Below, one piece after another: positions 24,759 to 47,953 of a stretch of 64,000 nt of DNA. The DNA lies in sequence record PP496438.1. The stretch is one strand, 5' to 3'. The position numbers were made by a program, and so were the translations under genes. Under the pieces are notes generated by a model. The model had not been told where the DNA came from, did not search any database, and saw only the letters and a program-made list of their open reading frames with translations. Position 1 is the first letter of the stretch; each line of letters opens with the position of its first letter.

Positions 24759-25859
24759 CTATAGGTTGCGGACTTTAATGAGGTTGCCACTGGATGCGGC
24801 GATTAACATGGTCTTGGTTAGCCCTCGCTTGCTGAAGCACAAATCGTCTTCGGCCAGCGGGCAGCTGAAATAATCATTCTTCATGATCTCGTCGTGATCC
24901 GCCTTGCAGTGGCAGGGACGCAACTTTTCGATCTTGTCGAATGTGGTCAACAATGCTGATTTACTGCGAACTTTCAACAAGTCCCTCCAGAGCTCCCATC
25001 CCAGCTCATATTCTGCCATGAGTTTTCGCAGTTGGCGCTTCTCTTTATCTGGCAGGATATCACCCACAATAACGCGGCGATGGAAGTTGTCTCGGGTGAT
25101 GTAGATCAGCATCCAGCCTTCAATGACGATGTTGTGCATCATTTCAAGCAGCACAATGTACGACTTGATCTGGGGCACGTTGGCTTTGGCTGGGAACACG
25201 CCACCTTCTTTCTGGTGCTTCATCACCTTGTAGCTGGACGTGGTCTTGTAGTCGATAACGTAGTACTTGCCGTCAAGCCAGAGCAGTCCGTCGGTGTGAC
25301 CCGTGATGTTCTTGCCATACCGAACTGCCAGCTCTTCATAGCGGAAGAACTTGTGCCCACACTTGACGCACTTGCCGGGATGGGGCGAGAACTCGTGGTT
25401 GTGTTTACACTTCTTGCAGTAGTAGTCGCCGACGATGGCCCGCTTGAGGCCCTTCATAAATTTCTGGCGACTCAGCTTCTTCTTCGTGGCTGTATCAAGG
25501 ACCTTGGCGTTACGGCGTGCCGTGTCTCCCATGGCGAATGGGGTCAGGCTGACAGCGTGCTGGAACGTCTCGTGCACCGCCGTACCAATGGACGTATAGA
25601 AGCCGCCACCGACAACTTCTTCCTCACGTTCCATAACCAGACCGCTTTCCAGCGTGGCGATGGCATGGTAGATCGGGCAGAACGGGAACGAACTAGGATG
25701 AAGATCCATCACCCGTGTTTCAGACATGTGGCGAACGTCCGTGACTTTGCACGCCTCCGCCATAATGCGTTCCATTTCTTTGAGCGCGTCGGCCATCGGA
25801 CCAGATGCTACCTGATGCCGACTCACTAACCCGATGTTTGCTTTTCCGAAACCTTTCAT
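24759..25859 (-). CDS. Cas4/RecB-like PD-(D/E)xK exonuclease with zinc-ribbon insert
   Basis: HPSSFPFCP, GTAVH, GHTDGLL..VIDYKT, QIKSY, C-terminal Cys cluster; insert CKKC..CVKC. Confidence 0.8.
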   Translation of the reverse strand: MKGFGKANIGLVSRHQVASGPMADALKEMERIMAEACKVTDVRHMSETRVMDLHPSSFPFCPIYHAIATLESGLVMEREEEVVGGGFYTSIGTAVHETFQHAVSLTPFAMGDTARRNAKVLDTATKKKLSRQKFMKGLKRAIVGDYYCKKCKHNHEFSPHPGKCVKCGHKFFRYEELAVRYGKNITGHTDGLLWLDGKYYVIDYKTTSSYKVMKHQKEGGVFPAKANVPQIKSYIVLLEMMHNIVIEGWMLIYITRDNFHRRVIVGDILPDKEKRQLRKLMAEYELGWELWRDLLKVRSKSALLTTFDKIEKLRPCHCKADHDEIMKNDYFSCPLAEDDLCFSKRGLTKTMLIAASSGNLIKVRNL

Positions 25860-26170: not shown

Positions 26171-27289
26171 ATGGCCAGCCAAGTCAAGCAAGATTATGCA
26201 GCGATCAGTGCGGCGCACCGTACGATCCTGCGGGAGATCGAAAGAATCCCCGGTCGCAAGAAGCATAAGCCGACCAATATCGAGATTCAATGCCCGTTCC
26301 ACCCCGGAGACAATACGCCGTCATGCGGCATTTATATAGGCACGGGTGGCACGCTGCCCCTAGGGTGGTTCTACTGTTTGGGTTGCGGTGCCAAAGGTCC
26401 GTGGAACAAGCTGGCCGAGAAGTTGAAGCTGCAAACCATTGCAAGGTCTGATACCAAACGGGACAGTGCCTCCGTATCCAGTACGGAAATGGATCGGGCC
26501 AGATTGAAGTGTATGGGCGCTGACAAGACCGGGGTGGATCAGTATGCCAGTGTGATGCGTCTGGGAATGCCTAAGCCGTTCGACAGGCCCCAGTGGAGGG
26601 GTATCAGTGGCGCCTTGATGAGGGACTTGGGTGCACAGATAGCGGTGGATACGACCAGCAAACGACTGCGGGAGGTGTTGCTGCTACCACTGACTCTATA
26701 TGGGGAATTGGTTACTGTCATCAAGGCAGCGATGTACAAAGTGAAGGGTGACCTGAGCTATGTCGTGTATGACGAAGCAGATACCAAGACGAAAGGGTTG
26801 TTCGGCTTCGACCTAGTGGTGGATATGCTGAACAAAGGAAAGTATCAGTGGGTGGTGCTCGTTGAAGGCCAGCGTGATGCGTTGCGCCTGATCCAGTACG
26901 GCATCCCGGCTATCGCCATCCTTGGCACCCAGAGTTGGACAGCGGAGAAGCGTGACCTGCTGGTGGGCTTGGGTACAGGGGTGGCCGTGATGATGGATGG
27001 TGACCCGGCAGGTGTGGCAGCGGCTAGGAAGATCATGCCGGACTTGCGCCGTCTAACAGAAGTCCGGGAAATTGATCTGATGCCGTTGACCGAGGAATTC
27101 GGACAGAAGGTGGACCCCGGCAACATGCCCATCTGGAAAATCAAGGAGCTGCAGGCGCTAAATGTCAGCAGCCGTAAACTTCGGGGGCGCAGAGTTCCCC
27201 GGTACAGTCGCAGGCAGGAACGTGTCGATAAGCAAACACGTCAAGGCCAAGTTAATCGATATCAAGTTGAACTGGAGCAGTCAGAATGA
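26171..27289 (+). CDS. dnaG: DnaG-type DNA primase (CHC2 zinc finger + TOPRIM)
   Basis: CPFH...YCLGC zinc finger; LVEGQRD and MMDGDPAG TOPRIM motifs; probable start ATG26171 (SD GAGGT); track starts at 26132. Confidence 0.85.
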   Translation: MASQVKQDYAAISAAHRTILREIERIPGRKKHKPTNIEIQCPFHPGDNTPSCGIYIGTGGTLPLGWFYCLGCGAKGPWNKLAEKLKLQTIARSDTKRDSASVSSTEMDRARLKCMGADKTGVDQYASVMRLGMPKPFDRPQWRGISGALMRDLGAQIAVDTTSKRLREVLLLPLTLYGELVTVIKAAMYKVKGDLSYVVYDEADTKTKGLFGFDLVVDMLNKGKYQWVVLVEGQRDALRLIQYGIPAIAILGTQSWTAEKRDLLVGLGTGVAVMMDGDPAGVAAARKIMPDLRRLTEVREIDLMPLTEEFGQKVDPGNMPIWKIKELQALNVSSRKLRGRRVPRYSRRQERVDKQTRQGQVNRYQVELEQSE

Positions 27290-28146
27290 AACGTAGTTCA
27301 TGGAGTGCCATCTTTCGCTACACGTGGGCGGACATGTTCAAGGGCATGGGGCCAGATTGGGCTCGTACGTGGAAAGACATACACGGGAGTATATACGGAC
27401 CCAATACGCCACTTACGTGGGTTCTTAAATCGATCATCACCGTGATGATCATCTTAGTGTCCATGGTGGTGTTCGTTATCCCCTTGATGATCACCGTATT
27501 CTTTGGTAACCTTTGGGAGAACTACAGACGGTTCCGGACTCCAGACATGCACTATGCTGCCGGTCGCCGTACGAGAAGAAAGCTTGATCTCCTCCTTCGT
27601 GCATATAACGTCGTAGATGTAGATAGGCAGAAAGGAACTCGGCCAATGATACGAGACGTATCCTTCGATCCGTTCTGGGGTGATTTCGTTCGACGGTGGA
27701 TCTCCGTATCTTCCGATAAACCTGTGAATTACGACCATATCCCCAAACCGGATACGTCCGGGGTCATTCCAGCCGTGCACCCGCTTGTGCGTAACGCTGC
27801 AGGCGGGGTTTCCGACATTCCAGCGCCCCAACGTACCCCGCCCCGCGTATCGAAGCGCCTGCGACATCCTACGCGGTCGCATAAACCCGGACTGGATGCA
27901 CTGGCCGACTTCAATTCAAGGTACCGTGGGCCAGCGCACATCCAGATTCCAGCGGGTATGAACATACGAATGGGCGAGGCAGTGGTTATCAAGGAGAGCG
28001 TAGCGTTGGCTTTCGATCACGCAGACCGGACTCGCTACTATATCGGAGGTGGCCGTTGGACATACGACTATGAAGAGTCCATCCGGTTCAAGCTGTTCTT
28101 TCAAGAGCTGGTGAAAGAGTTAGTTGACGTAATCGTCGAGCAGTAA
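27286..28146 (+). CDS. Hypothetical protein with an N-terminal hydrophobic (TM) segment
   Basis: IITVMIILVSMVVFVIPLMITVFF; ATGA overlap with the primase stop. Confidence 0.6.
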   Translation: MKRSSWSAIFRYTWADMFKGMGPDWARTWKDIHGSIYGPNTPLTWVLKSIITVMIILVSMVVFVIPLMITVFFGNLWENYRRFRTPDMHYAAGRRTRRKLDLLLRAYNVVDVDRQKGTRPMIRDVSFDPFWGDFVRRWISVSSDKPVNYDHIPKPDTSGVIPAVHPLVRNAAGGVSDIPAPQRTPPRVSKRLRHPTRSHKPGLDALADFNSRYRGPAHIQIPAGMNIRMGEAVVIKESVALAFDHADRTRYYIGGGRWTYDYEESIRFKLFFQELVKELVDVIVEQ

Positions 28147-28210
28147 GAAATAAAAACCCCCAAGCATTCTCGGACACAGCGCCGGTGGCTTGGGGGTTTT
28201 TATTTCTTAC
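28143..28210. terminator. Bidirectional terminator; 23-bp perfect inverted repeat including both convergent stop codons
   Basis: GTAAGAAATAAAAACCCCCAAGC-22 nt-GCTTGGGGGTTTTTATTTCTTAC. Confidence 0.8.
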
Positions 28211-28653
28211 TTGACAGCTCCGCCGACAATTGCGGCAGCAGGGCTGTACTTCGCCATCGGGTCTTCCGGCAAGGGAACGTCTTTGCACTGGTCCTCCTTG
28301 AGGTCACGCCGGTAGTAGCACAGGAGTACCTTGTCCGACTTGATGTACCCCATGATCGATTGCAGATTGACACCCATGCTCAGGTAGTCCTGCCATGACA
28401 GTGCCACGAACGTGGTCTTTCCATCAGCGACTTGCTTCTCGAACTCATCGATGTTCTTGTCGCTGACCACTTTCCACGTGACCGTCTTAAGGCTTAGCGG
28501 CTGCTGCCTTGGTGGATGGAACTGCGGGATTACTCCCGCATCTTCCGCCGGTTGCACATTGGAGGTCGTTGAGCACGCTGTTAGAAGCATTGTTAATACG
28601 ACGCTCAACAAGGGTAGGCTTCTTACGTACGACTTCTTCAGTCTTTTTATCAC
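28207..28653 (-). CDS. Outer-membrane spanin (o-spanin, Rz1-like lipoprotein)
   Basis: Lipobox LLTAC after a basic/hydrophobic signal; overlaps the 3' end of the i-spanin; located in the lysis cassette. Confidence 0.75.
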   Translation of the reverse strand: MIKRLKKSYVRSLPLLSVVLTMLLTACSTTSNVQPAEDAGVIPQFHPPRQQPLSLKTVTWKVVSDKNIDEFEKQVADGKTTFVALSWQDYLSMGVNLQSIMGYIKSDKVLLCYYRRDLKEDQCKDVPLPEDPMAKYSPAAAIVGGAVK

Positions 28654-28990
28654 GGTGACTCTCCAATTTATCGGTAGCGGTTTCTTTCTCGCTGCGGATG
28701 ATGTTCAACTGTTCGTTGACCGCGTTGGCGAAGAGTTGGGTAGATGTGGCGGAAGTCTGTAGCCGGGAGATCTGGAACGCGGCTTGACCCAGTTGCAGGT
28801 CACGTTGCGCGATAGTTCCCGCCTGCTTTTGGTTTTCTTCCTGAAGATGATACACCACTAGAATGCTGGCACCCAGTAGCGTTGCCAGAACAAGCGTAAC
28901 CCCGATCATCACCTTGCCCAGCATTGAACCGATAAGGCTCTTGCTGCCGGTAACCACCGCTTCCTCCACGGTATCGATCACGTTACTCAT
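28487..28990 (-). CDS. Inner-membrane spanin (i-spanin, Rz-like)
   Basis: N-terminal TM helix followed by coiled coil; KPTLVERRINNA resembles T4-type spanins. Confidence 0.7.
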   Translation of the reverse strand: MSNVIDTVEEAVVTGSKSLIGSMLGKVMIGVTLVLATLLGASILVVYHLQEENQKQAGTIAQRDLQLGQAAFQISRLQTSATSTQLFANAVNEQLNIIRSEKETATDKLESHRDKKTEEVVRKKPTLVERRINNASNSVLNDLQCATGGRCGSNPAVPSTKAAAAKP

Positions 28991-29303
28991 TGGTAGGATC
29001 TCTAGTTATGATTACAGATGGGGGAGGGCCATTGTCGAACTTCCCGTTAGGTCCGGTTTCCACGTAGAACTTGAAATAGGCCGCAGCAGAGCCGACGGTG
29101 GCAGCTAAGATTGCAGCAGCCCCCAGCCCATCCATGGACGACGCCTTCATCCAGTTGATAACATCAAATGACAGCTTCATCCAGAAGAACAGCAGCAGGA
29201 TGGGGAAGATCCGCCATGCGACCATGATGTATTGCACGTGGTCCACGAAAGACCTGAACCACGGATTTAGTTGTTGCGGATCAGGTTTCTGTGACGAAGC
29301 CAT
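28983..29303 (-). CDS. Putative holin (2 TM)
   Basis: 106 aa, two hydrophobic helices, between the amidase-like gene and the spanins. Confidence 0.55.
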   Translation of the reverse strand: MASSQKPDPQQLNPWFRSFVDHVQYIMVAWRIFPILLLFFWMKLSFDVINWMKASSMDGLGAAAILAATVGSAAAYFKFYVETGPNGKFDNGPPPSVIITRDPTNE

Positions 29304-29775
29304 ACGGCACCCCTTGTAGTGACTGCACTAGATCTTGTACGTCGAAGCATGGACTCTCCGTCGGCGGCTGTCCTTCCACCTGGGGATGTTCCTTGGCCCC
29401 GCGTATCTCCGTGAGGGGAATCCTGTACTTGCTGACCAAACTGTCCAGCAGATAACACAGCGACTCTTTCTGCACCGGCGTGAAGTTGTCCACCCACTCG
29501 CCTTTATTGTTCAAGCCCCCGATCAAGCAGATACCCAAGTTGCCCTGAGCCTTGTTCGGGGTGTGCATGCCGATCGACCTGTCGTCCCGACCATTGATCA
29601 CGTTCCCGTTTGGAAGAATCAGGTAGTGGAAGTCAATGAACAGTCCGGTGTGTGAACACTTGCGCTTCGGGTCTGACTGGCAGGACTTCATAGTCTGGGA
29701 GTTCAGGAATTCAAGCCATGAGAACCCCGTCATCTTTTCAGTCCCGGAGCAATGGATTGTTACCTCTGAGATCAT
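29281..29775 (-). CDS. T7-lysozyme/Amidase_2-fold protein, apparently catalytically degenerate
   Basis: IHCS, HYLILPNG..GR, GMH, LGICLIGG, DNFTPVQKESL and PCFDV align with T7 gp3.5; positions equivalent to Y46, H122, K128 and C130 are F, A, T and S. Confidence 0.75.
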   Translation of the reverse strand: MISEVTIHCSGTEKMTGFSWLEFLNSQTMKSCQSDPKRKCSHTGLFIDFHYLILPNGNVINGRDDRSIGMHTPNKAQGNLGICLIGGLNNKGEWVDNFTPVQKESLCYLLDSLVSKYRIPLTEIRGAKEHPQVEGQPPTESPCFDVQDLVQSLQGVPYGFVTET

Positions 29776-30242
29776 TATAACTCCCCTTGCAGCAATTGGC
29801 GGGTGTTGCCAGTTTTCCCGATCAAGCCAAGGTTCTTGGTGAAGAAGTCGAACAGGACTTTGCCCGTGACCGCGTGGTTCTTAGGCATAACTTCCACCCC
29901 GTTCTCGCGAAGGCACTCGGAGATGAGTTCGAAGCAGTACCACCTGTCCTTGGAGTGAATGTGCAGGAACCACAAGGCGATCCCGAGGAAGTCGTACTTA
30001 CGGCCTCTGTTCCGTAGCAAGAATTCCTTGGCATCCATCTGTGGGAAGTCGAACACCATGATGGTGCGATCCATCTCATGCTCCGGGAACGTGTTGATGT
30101 CGAGGTGACCCCGAGCCATGTTCGAGTCCCAGACTTCGTCTCCCTGCACAATGGACGCATGCGAAACAGGATAGCCTGTGCCGATACTGACAGCCATCGA
30201 TGCGATATCGTAGACATAGGCTTGATGAAGAATAACGCGCAT
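29775..30242 (-). CDS. Permuted papain-like (NlpC/P60, YiiX/YaeF-type) amidase
   Basis: SHASI (His), GRKYDFLG, WYCFELI (Cys) in permuted order. Confidence 0.7.
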   Translation of the reverse strand: MRVILHQAYVYDIASMAVSIGTGYPVSHASIVQGDEVWDSNMARGHLDINTFPEHEMDRTIMVFDFPQMDAKEFLLRNRGRKYDFLGIALWFLHIHSKDRWYCFELISECLRENGVEVMPKNHAVTGKVLFDFFTKNLGLIGKTGNTRQLLQGEL

Positions 30243-30327
30243 GATCCTAACCTTCCCTTTTGAACTGACTTACTGGTACCTGTATGATGTTTCGGATTGG
30301 GATAGGCAATCCTTTGCCTGTTCTTGC

Positions 30328-30888
30328 TTACCAGATGATAACGTTCAACTGTTCCCGAGTTTCTGCCACTTTGATCTGGTTTTCCAGCTGATCCTTCTTG
30401 ACCAAGGTATCCAGTATAAAGGCTTTGGCATCTTGCCCCACCTTTTGAATCTGGTCCTTGTTGTGCATCCGGTACTGACTCACGTTGTCCGAATCGGTGC
30501 ACCAGAACGGAGTCTGCCAGTTGTCATCTTTACTCAACAGCGAATCCACGACGGATGCTGTAAGGTTGGCCTGATCCGTAACCTTGGACGGGTACGTGTA
30601 AGACTTACCCAGCGCCGTGCTGACAAAGCCACTGGTGATCGCCACGGCACACGCCTTGGCAATGATGTCCAGCTTGTTCTCTCGCAACGATTCCACGTCG
30701 ATCATCTCAACGGGGGTAAGAGGTGCTTCGAACTGACCAGAACGGTATGTCCATCCCACTTGAACAGGTGAATCATCGCGAAGGCGTTGAAGTGTTCGGT
30801 TTGCTTCAGGTTTCCAATCGGATATACCATCCCACATCGCAATAGATTCCACGACGCCCTTGTAGATTACTGCGTAGTTATCACTCAT
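30328..30888 (-). CDS. Tail fibre assembly chaperone (DUF4376-like)
   Basis: Directly downstream of the tail fibre; VGWTY..F..P, AITSGF, YPS..TDQANL, QL..I.W terminus. Confidence 0.75.
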   Translation of the reverse strand: MSDNYAVIYKGVVESIAMWDGISDWKPEANRTLQRLRDDSPVQVGWTYRSGQFEAPLTPVEMIDVESLRENKLDIIAKACAVAITSGFVSTALGKSYTYPSKVTDQANLTASVVDSLLSKDDNWQTPFWCTDSDNVSQYRMHNKDQIQKVGQDAKAFILDTLVKKDQLENQIKVAETREQLNVIIW

Positions 30889-30940
30889 TGTATCTCCTTA
30901 ACTGGGCCGAAGCCCAGTTATCTAACTTGGGTATTAAGGG

Positions 30941-33900
30941 TTACCACTGGAGGAAGATTACGCCTGATTTACCCGCGCTGCCGTTCCCGCCTTTTGCCGC
31001 GCTGACGTTGGTGTAGTTCTGGCGAGTATACGCACCGCCACCGCCACCGCCACCTGCACCGTAACCAATCGAGGCTGAACCGTTGCTACCCGGACCGTTG
31101 GCCTGACGACCACCACCACCGCCCGTACCCCAAGGAGTACCTGCACCGGCACCGCCCGCACCACCCAGATACAAGCCGGGGGCGTCTTGTCCGTCGGTAA
31201 CACCGGGGACAAGGCTGATACCGCCTGCACCGGAAGAAGTACCACCGTACGCCCCCCGTGTGCCGCCGCCCAAAGTAAGAAGTGTGGTAGATCCGAGTTT
31301 GAACGTGGTAGCACTACCGTTACCTCCCAGAGCACCTGCACCCGCCTCACTACCTACCACACCTTGGGCCAAAGCCGGGCCACCATTACCGCCTGCGCCA
31401 CCGCCACCGATGGTAATGGTATAGGTGCTTCCCGGTACTACCGTGATCGGAGTAAGAACTGCATACGTACCACAACCACCACCCGAACCCCCACCTGCGC
31501 CACTGTCTGAGGCGCCACCGCCACCCGCACCACCGCCACCGCCACCGCAACCCGAAAGGTAAACAGTGGTCACACCTGCTGGACACAACCAAGAGCCGCT
31601 AGCAGTAAACGTCTGAACGCCGGTGAATTGTCCGATCATGTCTTGCGGAGCAACAATCGAACCTCGGTCAACGATCCAGTAGGAGGTGCCACTTGTTGCC
31701 AGCTCCAATGTCTCCAGTGGTTGCATGGTGATCTGCTGCACCGAACCAGAGTCACTGATGGTTGCACCGGACGGAGCTACAATAGTCTGAACCGTGGAAG
31801 TCGGGTTGCGGAACACGAAGGTTGCACCCGGAAGCAACGTGGTAGGATCTGGGAGCGTTACTGTGATTCCACTACCCGCCAGGTTCAACCAGTAGCCGGA
31901 ATGCGAGACGTCCAACGTGATGCTGGCGGATACCCCGACACCGACACCTTTGAACTTACGCGACTGCGAGAAGTTCAAGTTCTGTGCATAGGCCGTGTTA
32001 GCCAGACGAGTGCTGTTGTCCGTGGTAGGTGGTGTAGGTGCGGTCGGAGTTCCGATTAATGAAGGCGAGTCAGTGGCTACCGCCTCGTTCCACGCAGTCC
32101 AGTTTCCACCTGCCTGACTCCGCCAGAACATCCTGTTGTTGGAGTTAAGAGCAGTAGCAATCTGTAGGCAACCCCCACCGTTGTAGGGGACCACGATGAC
32201 TGAGAAGTTAGACGAGATCGGAATGTTGGCCGTGGTAGACTGAGCGCGGTACAAGCCACCCAATACAGCCTGGTTCATGTCGTTGCCGGTGACGATGTTG
32301 CTGACCAGCGTGCCCAGGCCCCATGATGCCAACTGGTTCTGAACGAACGCGGTGTTGGCGATGGTCAGGTCGGTATCACCCAGCGCAGCTGTAGGGGCCT
32401 GCGGGTCACCAGTGAATACCGGAGAGTTAGTACTCGCCAGTTCTGCCCATGCGAACCATGCACCATCATGCTTGACTCGCGTGAAGGTACGGTTACGGCC
32501 CGATGGGAAGATTGAGTTGGCGTACTGCGTGACCCGGAACGCCCCAGGCACACCAATGGTGATCAGGGTGAAGGCTACTGCTGTCGTACCCGCAACACCC
32601 AAGAGTGGACGGTTGTAGGTGGTCGAGTTGGTTTCCGTACCTTCGGCCTTAACGAAGGAGTTCAACGGGGCGTCGTTGAAGTTCAGAGTGTCGCCGCTGA
32701 TCGCGGAACCACCCAACCCAGATGCACCCATCAAACCTTGCACGAAAGCGGTGTTGGCAATACTCAGGTCGTTGTCTGCCAACGATGCTGTAGGAGCCTT
32801 TGGATCGCCAGTGAACGTCGGCGAATCCAGGCTTGCAATTTCACGCCATTGCGACCATTGAGTAACGCTGTTTACCTGCCCGTTGGACACCCGCTGGAAC
32901 ATGCGGTTGTTAGCCTGCGGCATGAAAATCTGCTGGGTGTAATACAGAGCGTTAGTGGCAACAATCACAACGCCGGACAGATAGTTCACGCCGTTGATCG
33001 TGATAGTCGAACTAACCTGATACGTACCACCCTCGGTTAGCGTACCAACGTCGGCAACAGTATCGTCCATGTCTGACGTACCAATACCGTACCGCGCCAA
33101 GACATTTCGGACGAAGTTCGTGGTAGCAACCGAGGTATCGTTATCCGTGGTTACCGGCGTCGGAGCCTTAGGATCCCCAGTGAAGACCGGGGAGTCCAGC
33201 GCTGCGAACTCTTTCCACCCACCCCACGAATTCGACGCACGAACACGCCAGAAGATGCGGGTAGGGTTCAACGGTGATGCCCAGATCTGCAACGCGGCGC
33301 TGCCATCCCCAAACGGGGTATGGATCATCAGGCCGTTAGACGCAATCGGAACACCGGTGGCAGTGGTAGAGGAGTTGTAGTAGAAACCACCTGCACCCAC
33401 GGCGTTAAGGTCTGTGACGTTCGCAGCATTCGGCGTACCGATACCGAACAGGGCCATTGCTGCTCTTACGAAAGCAGTGTTTGCCACCGAGGTATCTATG
33501 TCACCTGCCGCTGCCGTCGGGGCCTTGGGGTCGCCCGTGAACGTCGGCGAGTCAATCGTCGCCTTGGTAGCAATCAGGTTGTTCATCGTGGTTGCGAAGT
33601 TGGGATCGTCTCCCAGTGCCGCAGCCAGTTCGTTCAAGGTGTCCAATGCTCCCGGCGAAGAGTCGATCAGCGCAGCAATCGCCAGCTTCACGAAGGCCGT
33701 GGTAGCAACCGAGTTGTCATTATCTGTAAGCGGCGGAGTTGGTGCCTTGGGATCACCAGTGAACGTCGGACTGTTGATCGGTGCGTACGCCGTCAGGTCA
33801 ACTCGGGTACTGCTTACGAGTTGGAAGCTCGCCCCGTCGTAGAACACGTCATGCACCTTACCTACCGACAGCTCGCCGCCTGTGAGGGCATCCGTACCAT

Positions 33901-44401: not shown

Positions 44402-47400
44402 TTAGAAGGATGAATTGTTGACCATCATCACCATAATGTCATCGATGTTCTTGGCCGCTTTGGTCGTACCATTACCAGAGTTGCTGCCCCCACCACCGGA
44501 TTGAACCACTTGTGGTGCAGGTTGCTCTTTAACCGCATTGGTGGTACGGTCCTGTGTCTGAATGAGTGCTGCCGTCTGCGCAGTCTGCAACTGCGACTTG
44601 CTCTCATTGAGACTGCTTCGGGCGGAACCAACGTCTTGCAAGCTGTTGTTGGCTGCACTCAAAGACTTGAACTCACCTGTGACAAGGGGTGCCGAAGATT
44701 CTACTGGCTTGATCATCGACAGTCGTTGTGCCGGTTCGGTCAGCACACCTTTGCTAACCAGTGGGTCCAGCACAATTGCCGGATCTGTAGGCTTGCTCTG
44801 GGTGATCGGGACCGGACCAGTAACACCTTTAGTTGCCGACATCGACTGATTAGCAGCAGGCGTGGACACAGTGTTCGCTGGCAATGGGGTGATGCCTGGA
44901 ATGAAGGGTGGGGTAGGGGCAGCAGCACCTTTAACCGGTACGTCGGTGGCAGGTCCAGCCTTGCCGATAGCCAACGGAGTTACTATCTTGCCGTTGGTGT
45001 CTACCTTAGGTACAGTCATGGACGTACTGATCGCAGCATCCACTTTGTTCTTCATGTCCTTGCTGTACTTCTGGTTGTTCTCCGTACCGTTCCAGGCGTC
45101 AAGCATTTCTATGTCGGAGATCTGACCTTGGTAGCCTTCCTGACGGAACACTGCCTTGGCAATCGCCATCATCGTCGGCTGGTCGTTAGGATCCAGCTTC
45201 TGGTTTGGATCGATACCGGTTTCCTTCGAGACGGCCGTGACATAGCCACTGGTATCGTTCTCGTTCGGCGGTGTCAGCTTGTTGACCAACTGCTTCAAGG
45301 TCATGCCTTCCGCAGACACGTGCTTACGCGCCAGCTTGAACCACGCCCTCGCACCGTGCACGACAGTATCGAACTTCTCGAAGCCACCTTCCTGACCGAC
45401 TTCACCTACCCACTGGTTCTTGTCGCTGGCCCGGATGTTACCTGGGTTGAAGTTCCGGGTTGCCAGTGTGGCTTGTCCTTTAAGTGGTCCCGAGCCTGAA
45501 CCCTGATACGATACGCTCTGATCCAGCGTACCCGGCTGCGGCAGAACAGGAATGGCTTGGCCTTTGATGTTAGGTGACGCACTGAAGTCTTCAGCTGGGC
45601 TAGATACGGACTGTTCTTTGTCGAACCAGTTCATCGGATTGATGCGGGTTGCCAGATCCTTGGCTTTCTGCACCATGTCTGCGATACGGTTCGGGTTGCT
45701 GAAGAAGTCGATGGCCGCACCGATGGCAATACCCGTCGGGCCAAAGATTGCACCCTTGAGTCCACCTTCACCAAGGTAATCCTTGGCGGTGTCCAGCATG
45801 TTCGTGCCGAGCTTGGTCACAGAGTCCAAAGTACCCGACGCCAGATCCTGTACCGACTTCCAGCCCTCCGTGCCCCACGTTGTGACAGTATCCCAGCCTT
45901 TGCTTAGGCCGGTCATCATGTCATTAGTGAAACCTTCCATATACTTCGATGCTTTGTCCAGGCCACCGGCTACTGTGTCAGTGACGAACTTGGATGCAGG
46001 TCCCAGTACGTTGGTAACCTTGTCCAGTCCCGCATAGATGTCTTTGGTGTCGATCAAGCCGAACGACAACCCCGAGGCAATAGAGGATAGTGCAGCTTGA
46101 GACTTCTGACCGAACGTGGCTTCTTGGCCCGGCTTCAACCCGGCGATGTCTGAGGCGTTATTCCAACCGTCGAACCCATCGTAGGCCGCCATCGCAGCGA
46201 TACCGATAGGACCTAGGAGTTTGCTGGCACCGGAAAGCATGCCTCGACCCGCCATACGGGCTACCTTACCCCCAGCTCTGGCTAACCCCACGCCTCGGCT
46301 GGCAAGCTTACCTGCACGGGTAGCTGGCTTTGGGCGTGCCGACGGAACGTGAGGTTCACCAGCGGACGGGGCGGAAGTACGTGAAGATGAGGGAACAGTC
46401 GTGTGTGGATTAGAAGAAGAATTACGAGGACGAACTTCACCCGTGGCCGTATCCAGAACTGCATCAATGTTGTCATCTGTTCGGTCGCGACCCCGACGTA
46501 GGCCGACCAGACTACCAATAGCCCCGGCTCCGGCACCTACGAATGCTGCCATCTTACCGACGCGACCCGTGGCGAAGCGTCCTACACCTTTAGCAGCACG
46601 CCCAAGACGACTACCGCCCCGAGCGGCACCTTCCGCCGTACCCGCAGCACCCCTTGCAGCACCTTTACGCGCAGCGCGGCCTGCGAGGATAGCCGAACCA
46701 GCGGCACCCAGACCACCCACGATACCGTCGGATAATCCCAGAGCAGCGTCGAAGTTACCCAAGCCTAGAGCATTTAGCAACCCGGAGATTGCAGTGGACG
46801 CTACGCCTTTACCGGCGGCAACGATGCCGGGGTTACGGACGAAGCGATCACTCAATTTGTTCTTTTGCAGCCCAGTCTCTACGTCGCTATGATCCAGCAA
46901 TGACTCATCGAACTTCTCATTCAACTCTTTCAGGTTGAATACGATCTTTTCGTCAGTGGTGTCCGCCTGCACTTTCTGCAAGATGTTGGCAACTTTCTTG
47001 CTGGTGTGTGCGTTCAGCTTACCGTCTGCCCGGAACGCCTTCTGCATAGCCACCACTTGCGCGGCGAACTGCGGAATGGCAGACAGCTGTTTGATCACAC
47101 CTTGCATCGCATCCTTGCGCTCGTTCAGATTACCGTTCTTCAACGTCTTGATAGCACCCGCGATATCCGCGTCTACCGACTGGCGTTGGAATGCAACCTT
47201 CTCATACCCCTTGAGCATGGTTGCAATCTGAGCGTATTCCTTCTCCGAGATGTCGCTGTTATGCGACAGGAGCTTCTCGATGTCCTTTAACTGCGGGTTC
47301 TCTTTAAGCTGACGCGACTGGCGCAGGAAACCCACAGTCTCACCGGCAATGGTGCTACGGTAGTTCTTGCCCAGTCGGCGGTCCGTGATCCTGTCCGTCA

Positions 47401-47953
47401 TCTGATTGACGACTTTGCTGCTGTCTACGTGCGCAATAGGAGCAACCGCTTTTAGATCGGTAGCTACCGCTTTGGCAGACTCGACAACGGCGTGCGCCTG
47501 ATCAGAGTCAACTGACTTCCGGTTCAACACATCTTCGTACAGCTTGCGCTCAGGACCGGAGCGGAACTTCTGCAGGCGTTCCAGTGCGTCCATCTGGTTT
47601 TGAATGGTCTCTTGCAGGGAATCATCGCCCTGCTTCTGAGCCTTCTTCATCTGTTTCATCAGTTCCAGCTGAGTCTTACTGTAATCCAGCAGATCCGACT
47701 GGTTGCTCACCGAGTCCAGAATGGTGGTCAACTGATCGTGTAAACCTTTACCCATGAGGAAGGTGGGCACCATGGATTTCATGGCACGCTTGAGCACGTC
47801 AACGCCTTCCGTGAAAGCACTAGATGCCAATGCGTTTGACCGCTCGGCCATCTTGAGTTGCTTTTCACTCATCTTGTCCCGATCAATGGAACTCGGGTCG
47901 ATGTTGTTACTCTTGAGGATGTCTAGGTACGTTTCATTGATTAGGGTCGGCAT
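44402..47953 (-). CDS. Tape measure protein with lysozyme-like muramidase domain
   Basis: 1183 aa; helical N-half, Gly/Ala-rich middle; RNFNPGNIR..F....G......L.....TPP.ENDT.GY...FRQEG domain near aa 835-940. Confidence 0.75.
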   Translation of the reverse strand: MPTLINETYLDILKSNNIDPSSIDRDKMSEKQLKMAERSNALASSAFTEGVDVLKRAMKSMVPTFLMGKGLHDQLTTILDSVSNQSDLLDYSKTQLELMKQMKKAQKQGDDSLQETIQNQMDALERLQKFRSGPERKLYEDVLNRKSVDSDQAHAVVESAKAVATDLKAVAPIAHVDSSKVVNQMTDRITDRRLGKNYRSTIAGETVGFLRQSRQLKENPQLKDIEKLLSHNSDISEKEYAQIATMLKGYEKVAFQRQSVDADIAGAIKTLKNGNLNERKDAMQGVIKQLSAIPQFAAQVVAMQKAFRADGKLNAHTSKKVANILQKVQADTTDEKIVFNLKELNEKFDESLLDHSDVETGLQKNKLSDRFVRNPGIVAAGKGVASTAISGLLNALGLGNFDAALGLSDGIVGGLGAAGSAILAGRAARKGAARGAAGTAEGAARGGSRLGRAAKGVGRFATGRVGKMAAFVGAGAGAIGSLVGLRRGRDRTDDNIDAVLDTATGEVRPRNSSSNPHTTVPSSSRTSAPSAGEPHVPSARPKPATRAGKLASRGVGLARAGGKVARMAGRGMLSGASKLLGPIGIAAMAAYDGFDGWNNASDIAGLKPGQEATFGQKSQAALSSIASGLSFGLIDTKDIYAGLDKVTNVLGPASKFVTDTVAGGLDKASKYMEGFTNDMMTGLSKGWDTVTTWGTEGWKSVQDLASGTLDSVTKLGTNMLDTAKDYLGEGGLKGAIFGPTGIAIGAAIDFFSNPNRIADMVQKAKDLATRINPMNWFDKEQSVSSPAEDFSASPNIKGQAIPVLPQPGTLDQSVSYQGSGSGPLKGQATLATRNFNPGNIRASDKNQWVGEVGQEGGFEKFDTVVHGARAWFKLARKHVSAEGMTLKQLVNKLTPPNENDTSGYVTAVSKETGIDPNQKLDPNDQPTMMAIAKAVFRQEGYQGQISDIEMLDAWNGTENNQKYSKDMKNKVDAAISTSMTVPKVDTNGKIVTPLAIGKAGPATDVPVKGAAAPTPPFIPGITPLPANTVSTPAANQSMSATKGVTGPVPITQSKPTDPAIVLDPLVSKGVLTEPAQRLSMIKPVESSAPLVTGEFKSLSAANNSLQDVGSARSSLNESKSQLQTAQTAALIQTQDRTTNAVKEQPAPQVVQSGGGGSNSGNGTTKAAKNIDDIMVMMVNNSSF

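Follow-up and report, generated by a model that had tools for sequence, protein, structure and literature searches.

What keeps an amidase gene in a phage lysis cassette when the residues required for amidase activity are gone? The question is raised by SKa4_00118, a gene of Pseudomonas phage vB_PpuM-SKa-4 (hereafter SKa-4), a 202-kb myovirus of Pseudomonas putida from the Estonian CEPEST collection. The gene is annotated “amidase” in the GenBank record (PP496438.1), and the CEPEST collection paper makes no mention of an endolysin or amidase. We analyzed a stretch of 64,000 nucleotides of this record (the window), in which each position equals the record position minus 62000 (27000-33000 corresponds to 89000-95000 at 100% identity). 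A first-pass annotation, made from the letters alone, had proposed that the SKa4_00118 product is a catalytically dead relative of T7 lysozyme and of the peptidoglycan recognition proteins (PGRPs). Our analysis leads to the following reading, to which we assign a probability of about 70%: the protein would be a folded pseudoenzyme of the Amidase_2 family, once the endolysin of the cassette and now kept by purifying selection for a non-catalytic role in lysis, while a GH19 endolysin lyses the cell by way of the cassette holin. The coordinates of all features are collected in Table 1.

The sequence of SKa4_00118 matches Pfam Amidase_2 (PF01510) with 32.7 bits (gathering cut-off, 26) and the amidase family phrog_822 (3.7e-23), and its best match by sequence among solved structures is T7 lysozyme (1lba, 6e-15). 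For the AlphaFold2 (AF2) model built from 83 sequences (predicted local distance difference test [pLDDT], 85; predicted template modeling score [pTM], 0.81), the top Foldseek match was again T7 lysozyme 1lba (E = 9.5e-10; template modeling [TM] scores, 0.70/0.78), followed by clostridial and Thermus amidase endolysins and insect PGRPs. PGRP-SA and PGRP-SD are found among both the structural and the sequence matches. The protein contains neither a signal peptide nor a transmembrane segment.

The active site was compared in a MAFFT alignment of 151 sequences, comprising SKa4_00118, T7 gp3.5 (from AY264774), and 149 representatives retrieved by an exhaustive HMMER search; the codons were also read by eye from the nucleotide sequence. 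Of the three zinc ligands, the first alone is left (H8): A127 and S141 occupy the columns of the other two, T7 H122 and C130, and F49 replaces the catalytic tyrosine Y46, all as the first-pass annotation had read from the letters. This state is far from the family norm and is no chance fluctuation (column counts in Table 1). A fourth substitution, T7 K128 to T139, had been listed as a further sign of inactivity. The substitution is there, but it was ruled out as evidence, Thr being natural in this column in 17 relatives and in the active Ts2631 endolysin (PMC4573324). The nearby C143 (“PCF”) falls in the T7 S132 column, where 81 of the 151 sequences have Cys, for the most part in a “CPCFD” that also contains C130; C143 is thus a family feature and no obvious replacement ligand. 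Among the groove-related residues, G69, H71, and R63 are kept, whereas a near-invariant family Asn has given way to A76, with Ala, Thr, or Ser at this position.

For each of the three relevant substitutions, the effect of a single change in a homolog is on record. The equivalent single mutants of the Ts2631 endolysin retain 10% (Y58F), 3% (H131N), and 12% (C139S) of the activity, and the summary of T7 lysozyme given in the same paper names the corresponding zinc-ligand and Tyr residues as required (PMC4573324), in agreement with the dependence that the first-pass annotation had invoked. Because SKa4_00118 carries three substitutions at once, each of which is singly inactivating in homologs, the loss of its zinc-amidase activity is strongly indicated, and the protein almost certainly cannot cut peptidoglycan. 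The Cys-to-Ser change also recurs in non-catalytic animal PGRPs, as had been pointed out: with Ser for Cys and Thr two residues earlier, T139-E-S141 in the K128/C130 columns matches Thr156/Ser158 of PGRP-SA (PMC515366). PGRP-SA binds peptidoglycan and, in addition, acts on diaminopimelic acid (DAP)-type peptides as a very slow L,D-carboxypeptidase (kcat, 0.48 per hour) that needs His42 and Ser158 each, and, in the account of PGRP-SC1B given in the same paper, a Cys-to-Ser or Cys-to-Ala change kills the activity while peptidoglycan binding survives (PMC515366).

The gene is nevertheless maintained. The cassette region is present at 85-99% nucleotide identity in eight sibling phages, and the open reading frame (ORF) of the pseudo-amidase is intact in all nine siblings. 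Its ratio of non-synonymous to synonymous substitution rates (dN/dS, by the Nei-Gojobori method) is 0.10 against Peetri, 0.12 against Illi-2, and 0.04 against Voja-6, in the same range as those of the neighboring C92-like, holin, and spanin genes. The comparison with Peetri comprises 24 synonymous and 10 non-synonymous differences, and the synonymous excess is significant in the three sibling comparisons (p values in ascending order: 8e-11, 5e-10, and 1.5e-3); dS among the siblings reaches 0.26. Residue by residue, positions 8, 49, 127, 130, 139, 141, and 143 are unchanged in Peetri, Illi-2, Voja-6, and Lauda, and the Aura copy is 100% identical to that of SKa-4. That the gene is kept under purifying selection and is not decaying is thus well supported by these comparisons.

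Among 1.8 billion representatives, a single protein fell between the cluster of SKa4_00118 and the generic family. This protein, P0002 (138 amino acids; E = 2e-22; 42-48% identity), is a singleton on an assembled contig of 3.2 kb (L008). As in SKa-4, its gene overlaps by 23 nucleotides a holin-like gene (65% identical), which is followed by genes for an i-spanin (39% identical) and an o-spanin (57% identical). In the catalytic columns, P0002 has R at H17, H at Y46, and E at H122, and a deletion has removed the whole C-terminal ligand segment; it lacks the counterparts of H8, of the T-x-S segment, of H130, and of C143. Two further deletions have taken away loops of 6 and 7 residues, and with them positions that are nearly invariant in the family. 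All four indels of P0002 are in frame, and the gene contains no stops or frameshifts. The model of P0002 (pLDDT, 79) matches amidase endolysins and T7 lysozyme in Foldseek with TM scores of ~0.55-0.6. As judged from this comparison, whatever retains the cassette gene does not need the zinc site, and in the P0002 lineage an intact substrate groove is probably not needed either. A scan of viral contigs with the two-sequence alignment of pseudo-amidases found no relative, and word-index protein searches with SKa4_00118, its C92-like neighbor, and P0002 retrieved only their own clusters.

These data bear on three alternatives. The first-pass annotation had named intact orthologs beside a decaying SKa-4 copy as the finding that would speak against its proposal, and had called for a check of whether orthologs share the substitutions under purifying selection. 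The siblings compared do share them and are under such selection, and the only diverged ortholog is more degenerate still, with its ORF intact. That SKa4_00118 is a recently inactivated endolysin decaying after a takeover by the GH19 enzyme is scarcely credible. Although GH19 would make the amidase redundant and loops and ligands have been lost progressively in P0002, ten genomes carry the ORF intact, dN/dS is ~0.1 at a dS of up to 0.26, and neither stops nor frameshifts have accumulated even at 42-48% identity; decay was rejected on these grounds.

It is likewise unlikely, albeit to a lesser degree, that SKa4_00118 is still a peptidoglycan hydrolase that works through a His8-Ser141 dyad or through a rebuilt metal site combining H8 with H130, C143, or acidic residues. 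The peptidoglycan of P. putida is of the DAP type, and H130 (“KEHP”) and C143 do not vary among the siblings, although such invariance is meaningless at so low a divergence. H8 and T139-E-S141 match the arrangement that PGRP-SA needs for L,D-carboxypeptidase activity (PMC515366), but an activity as slow as that of PGRP-SA would be useless for a lysis enzyme. C143 is no obvious substitute ligand, given the usual presence of both cysteines in the family, and the absence of H8, the T-x-S segment, H130, and C143 from P0002 speaks against such a hydrolase.

The third alternative emerges from the overlap with the holin-like gene. In SKa-4, the Shine-Dalgarno sequence (AAGGGG) and the ATG of the holin are embedded in the pseudo-amidase codons for the C-terminal LQGVPYG, and the P0002 contig has the same layout, with AAAGGAG and ATG within the codons for LKGVPYG. 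We considered L(Q/K)GVPYG as a protein-interaction motif and rejected it, given that it coincides with the holin Shine-Dalgarno sequence and start codon in both lineages. Under the most sweeping interpretation of this overlap, the gene would have no function of its own and its ORF would stay open only for translational coupling to the ribosome-binding site and start of the holin; the in-frame state of all four P0002 indels and the coupling of the C92-like gene upstream (TAATG) are in line with it. Coupling, however, penalizes stops and frameshifts but tolerates missense changes; nonetheless, the dN/dS over the whole gene is as low as in the holin and spanin genes; the holin signals cannot, on this evidence, explain the low values over the rest of the gene. 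Furthermore, core elements of the fold are kept at 42-48% identity, and both SKa4_00118 and P0002 are confidently modeled as this fold. We consider a purely translational role very unlikely.

If SKa4_00118 does not cut the wall, another enzyme should. Most likely, this is SKa4_00071, a GH19 protein annotated “endolysin” that is encoded outside the window, ~35 kb from the cassette, which is the only recognizable cassette of holin and spanin genes. It matches phrog_181 (5e-64) and the PDB structures 9eoi (3e-46), 8p8e (4e-40), and 4ok7 (SPN1S endolysin; 5e-25), whereas its match to Pfam GH19 is below the cut-off (22.5 vs 25.5). The motifs “HES” and “FEEGLNYS” are present, and we take their Glu residues to be the catalytic ones of GH19. 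All nine siblings carry SKa4_00071 at 98-100% identity, and the family of this protein occurs in ~600 phage records, some of them annotated as R2-pyocin lytic enzyme. Its N-terminus is not hydrophobic, and none of the neighboring genes encodes a membrane protein, hence none a holin. The gene that overlaps it upstream, SKa4_00072, encodes a soluble protein of 113 amino acids without a family match.

Six-frame searches of the whole SKa-4 record revealed no second Amidase_2 domain and no Phage_lysozyme, M23, or NlpC/P60 domain; the only signal was a sub-threshold SLT-like region within a structural-region protein. The C92-like neighbor of the pseudo-amidase is less likely than GH19 to be the lysis enzyme because a connection with peptidoglycan is unproven and the homolog in phage ME3 lies outside a lysis context (see below). 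Most simply, the lysis system would be split between two loci: GH19 would be the muralytic enzyme, the holin and the spanins would come from the cassette, and the dead amidase would sit in the old endolysin slot. In an orthodox endolysin that is conserved in the nine siblings, the expectation of the first-pass annotation that lysis is supplied by a second enzyme, to be found by searching the genome, thus has its candidate. Another gene labeled “endolysin”, SKa4_00133 (window 44402-47953, minus strand; 1183 amino acids), matches tape-measure and tail-injection transglycosylase PHROGs at residues 670-970; its product resembles a tape-measure-type protein with a lytic segment and probably serves to pierce the wall from the virion rather than as the lysis endolysin.

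Taken together, we propose that the ancestor of SKa4_00118 was the amidase endolysin of a tail-fiber-proximal cassette of endolysin, holin, and spanin genes and that SKa4_00118 has been kept in place as a pseudoenzyme under purifying selection. The closest active relative on a long contig, P0004, has the canonical residues HYHKC and is encoded after a protein of >1,700 amino acids and before two membrane proteins, a setting that fits an ancestral active cassette endolysin. Wall degradation would fall to the signal-less GH19 endolysin encoded ~35 kb away and released through the cassette holin. The dead amidase would remain in the cytoplasm until the holin fires and would then take a non-catalytic part in lysis. 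The 3′ part of its coding sequence doubles as the ribosome-binding site and start codon of the holin. As to the nature of this part, the protein may dock on DAP-type peptidoglycan in the manner of non-catalytic PGRPs or, alternatively, may contact the holin, GH19, or the C92-like neighbor and tune lysis. The roles offered by the first-pass annotation, a peptidoglycan-binding adaptor, a lysis-timing regulator, or a muropeptide sponge, are conjectural. By analogy, docking is plausible because SKa4_00118 is in a PGRP-SA-like state, with the His kept and Thr-x-Ser for Lys-x-Cys. The still greater losses of P0002 speak for a different conserved function, the simplest candidate being contacts with other proteins of the lysis machinery. 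The most specific form of the proposal, a dedicated non-catalytic lysis factor that docks on peptidoglycan or on a lysis protein such as the holin tail, the GH19 endolysin, or the coupled C92-like hydrolase and sets the timing or efficiency of lysis, as a phage counterpart of the dLytM and PGRP proteins, is tentative and in our judgment more doubtful than not.

Several points weigh against the overall proposal or parts of it. The losses in P0002 argue against a conserved function of the peptidoglycan groove and so weaken the peptidoglycan-binding version. The clade is tiny, with nine near-identical phages and one metagenomic singleton, and the argument from conservation in orthologs therefore rests on one diverged sequence, P0002. 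The need to translate the holin may explain why the L(Q/K)GVPYG motif is conserved and why the frame stays open. Finally, the His/Thr-x-Ser arrangement linked to the slow L,D-carboxypeptidase of PGRP-SA is retained in SKa4_00118, and some hydrolysis is possible.

Loss of the zinc site is not confined to this cassette. Among the top 150 matches, four further, independent relatives (P0014, P0029, P0076, and P0141) keep H17 and Y46 and have lost both H122 and C130, the Cys being mostly replaced by Ser. P0029, P0076, and P0141 are encoded at the gene-3.5 position of T7-like contigs, between the endonuclease and primase-helicase genes, and the P0029 contig also carries a gene for a T7-type RNA polymerase (RNAP). 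By analogy with T7, such gene-3.5 proteins may be lysozymes that act only as RNAP regulators; as far as their sequences tell, the T7-lysozyme scaffold can persist without catalysis, and zinc-site loss in this family appears to be recurrent.

Such reuse of the scaffold, together with the retention of RNAP inhibition by amidase-negative T7 lysozyme mutants (as summarized in PMC4573324), raises the possibility that SKa4_00118 regulates transcription by protein binding, like T7 lysozyme. The first-pass annotation had alluded to this second function of T7 lysozyme, but in SKa-4 the analogy has no visible target. A six-frame search of the 202-kb record with PF00940 gave no match, although the control genomes were silent as well, and there is no T7-type RNAP among the 241 annotated features (tables to position 199,999). 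Moreover, the pseudo-amidase gene belongs to a late lysis cassette and is translationally linked to the holin, rather than being located among early or middle genes. We regard a role in transcription as highly improbable.

Compared with known systems, SKa4_00118 shares with T7 lysozyme (gp3.5, 151 amino acids) and the Ts2631 endolysin the fold, a similar length (164 vs 151 amino acids for gp3.5), and the first His motif, IHCSGT, and with active T7-type amidase relatives the endolysin slot next to holin and spanins; it differs from T7 lysozyme and Ts2631 in the absence of the second His, the Cys, and the catalytic Tyr and, in SKa-4, in the absence of a detected T7-type RNAP. Common features with PGRP-SA and PGRP-SD are the PGRP/Amidase_2 fold, Ser for Cys, Thr two residues before it, and the retained first His. 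In SKa4_00118, however, the losses extend to the Tyr, the second His, and the Asn at position 76, and in P0002 to two loops; in addition, PGRP-SA and PGRP-SD are secreted immune receptors, whereas SKa4_00118 is phage encoded, predicted to be cytoplasmic, and part of a lysis operon. The zinc-less P0029, P0076, and P0141 belong to the same family and have lost the same two ligands, but they keep Tyr46 and occupy the gene-3.5 site of T7-like genomes, in contrast to the lysis cassette of a myovirus.

Escherichia coli EnvC and NlpD are dead M23 (LytM) homologs, bacterial and periplasmic, that activate Amidase_3 enzymes. As dead wall-hydrolase homologs retained as regulators, they exemplify a logic that could apply to SKa4_00118, although the latter is a phage protein of the Amidase_2 fold and its partner is only hypothetical.

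A literature search on phage pseudoenzymes among endolysins brought up nothing relevant, and no pseudo-endolysin of this kind is reported in the papers searched. If a regulatory or wall-binding role holds, SKa4_00118 would become the first described case of a pseudo-endolysin conserved as part of Gram-negative phage lysis, in parallel with the non-catalytic PGRPs and dLytM factors, where dead wall hydrolases are reused as binders or regulators; the holin, pseudo-endolysin, and spanins would then form a module passed from phage to phage as a whole. The split arrangement would in turn place the endolysin of a jumbo phage 35 kb from its holin and spanins. In practical terms, annotation by position and domain, for example, in mining for antibacterial endolysins, would call SKa4_00118 the lysin.

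Table 1. Features of the lysis cassette of SKa-4, active-site codons of the pseudo-amidase, and genes elsewhere. Window positions unless stated otherwise; counts are for columns of the 151-sequence alignment.
Feature	Position	Strand	Evidence or remark
Pseudo-amidase SKa4_00118, zinc-less T7-lysozyme/PGRP-fold protein, 164 aa	29281..29775	-	Pfam, PHROG, alignment, AF2/Foldseek
H8 (T7 H17)	CAT 29754-29752	-	H in 132/151; ligand 1 kept, motif IHCSGT
F49 (T7 Y46)	TTC 29631-29629	-	Y in 147/151; SKa4_00118 has the sole F
A127 (T7 H122)	GCC 29397-29395	-	H in 140/151; SKa4_00118 has the sole A
T139 (T7 K128)	ACG 29361-29359	-	K in 106/151, T in 17
S141 (T7 C130)	AGT 29355-29353	-	C in 140/151, S in 4
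23-nt overlap, pseudo-amidase 3′ end/holin-like start	29281..29303	-	sequence
Holin-like membrane protein, 106 aa	28983..29303	-	phrog_10198
i-spanin (Rz-like), 167 aa	28487..28990	-	phrog_739, 5e-16
o-spanin, 148-aa ORF, lipobox LLTAC	28207..28653	-	phrog_812, 6e-20, residues 16-125
Terminator-like hairpin and T-run just after the o-spanin stop	28159..28174	-	consensus scan only; 1 found vs 2.9 expected
Permuted-papain-like (Peptidase_C92-like) protein, 155 aa	29775..30242	-	weak family signals
GH19 endolysin SKa4_00071	PP496438.1 55930-56604 (outside window; L005:5930-6604)	-	PHROG, PDB, motifs
Zinc-less T7-lysozyme homolog P0029	L030:5001-5465		
Zinc-less T7-lysozyme homolog P0076	L033:3896-4432		
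Zinc-less T7-lysozyme homolog P0141	L031:574-1047		
Zinc-less T7-lysozyme homolog P0014	L032:145-750		

The pseudo-amidase occupies the canonical position of an endolysin, with its gene overlapping that of the holin, followed by those of the i-spanin and the o-spanin. The holin-like protein contains a clear hydrophobic stretch (residues ~26-44) and, by eye, a second, Ala-rich one (~59-81). Its family, PHROG 10198, is labeled “unknown function”. Distant relatives share the AAAYFKFYVETG motif (L012:5576-6213; L009:2935-3665) and are encoded, in other phage contigs, immediately behind an M23-like peptidase (recognized by its HxxxD and HxH motifs) or behind spanins, contexts that support the assignment of this unannotated family as holins. 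Scans of viral and metagenome sequences with the holin yielded distant relatives only (36-47% identity), and tblastn found no ortholog of the amidase adjoining them.

The o-spanin gene overlaps the 3′ end of the i-spanin gene in another frame. It is under-annotated in GenBank, where only the last 56 amino acids are given, as “hypothetical protein” SKa4_00115 (28207-28377); the sibling tables that we looked at are alike in this respect. The cassette transcript probably ends at the hairpin downstream of the o-spanin stop.

On the other side, the stop codon of the C92-like gene overlaps the start of the pseudo-amidase gene. The position that the first-pass annotation had given for the dead amidase, between holin and spanins and a permuted papain amidase, stands, but the amidase role of the papain-like neighbor is less certain: the protein is C92-like, with weak family signals (Peptidase_C92, E = 0.004; PHROG 1128, 2e-8; language-model neighbors that include C92 clusters). 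The label of PHROG 1128, “enoyl-CoA hydratase-like”, looks like a mislabel. The candidate residues His28 and Cys103 are conserved in a homolog from the Acinetobacter jumbo phage ME3 (27% identity), the only one outside the siblings in the phage collection, where the gene is located among small genes without known function. There is no support for a conserved partnership between the pseudo-amidase and the C92-like protein, a DUF7338 protein being encoded upstream on the P0002 contig instead. Farther along the window, SKa4_00111 (24759-25859, minus strand), just upstream of a primase gene, carries the GenBank label “CRISPR/Cas system associated protein”.

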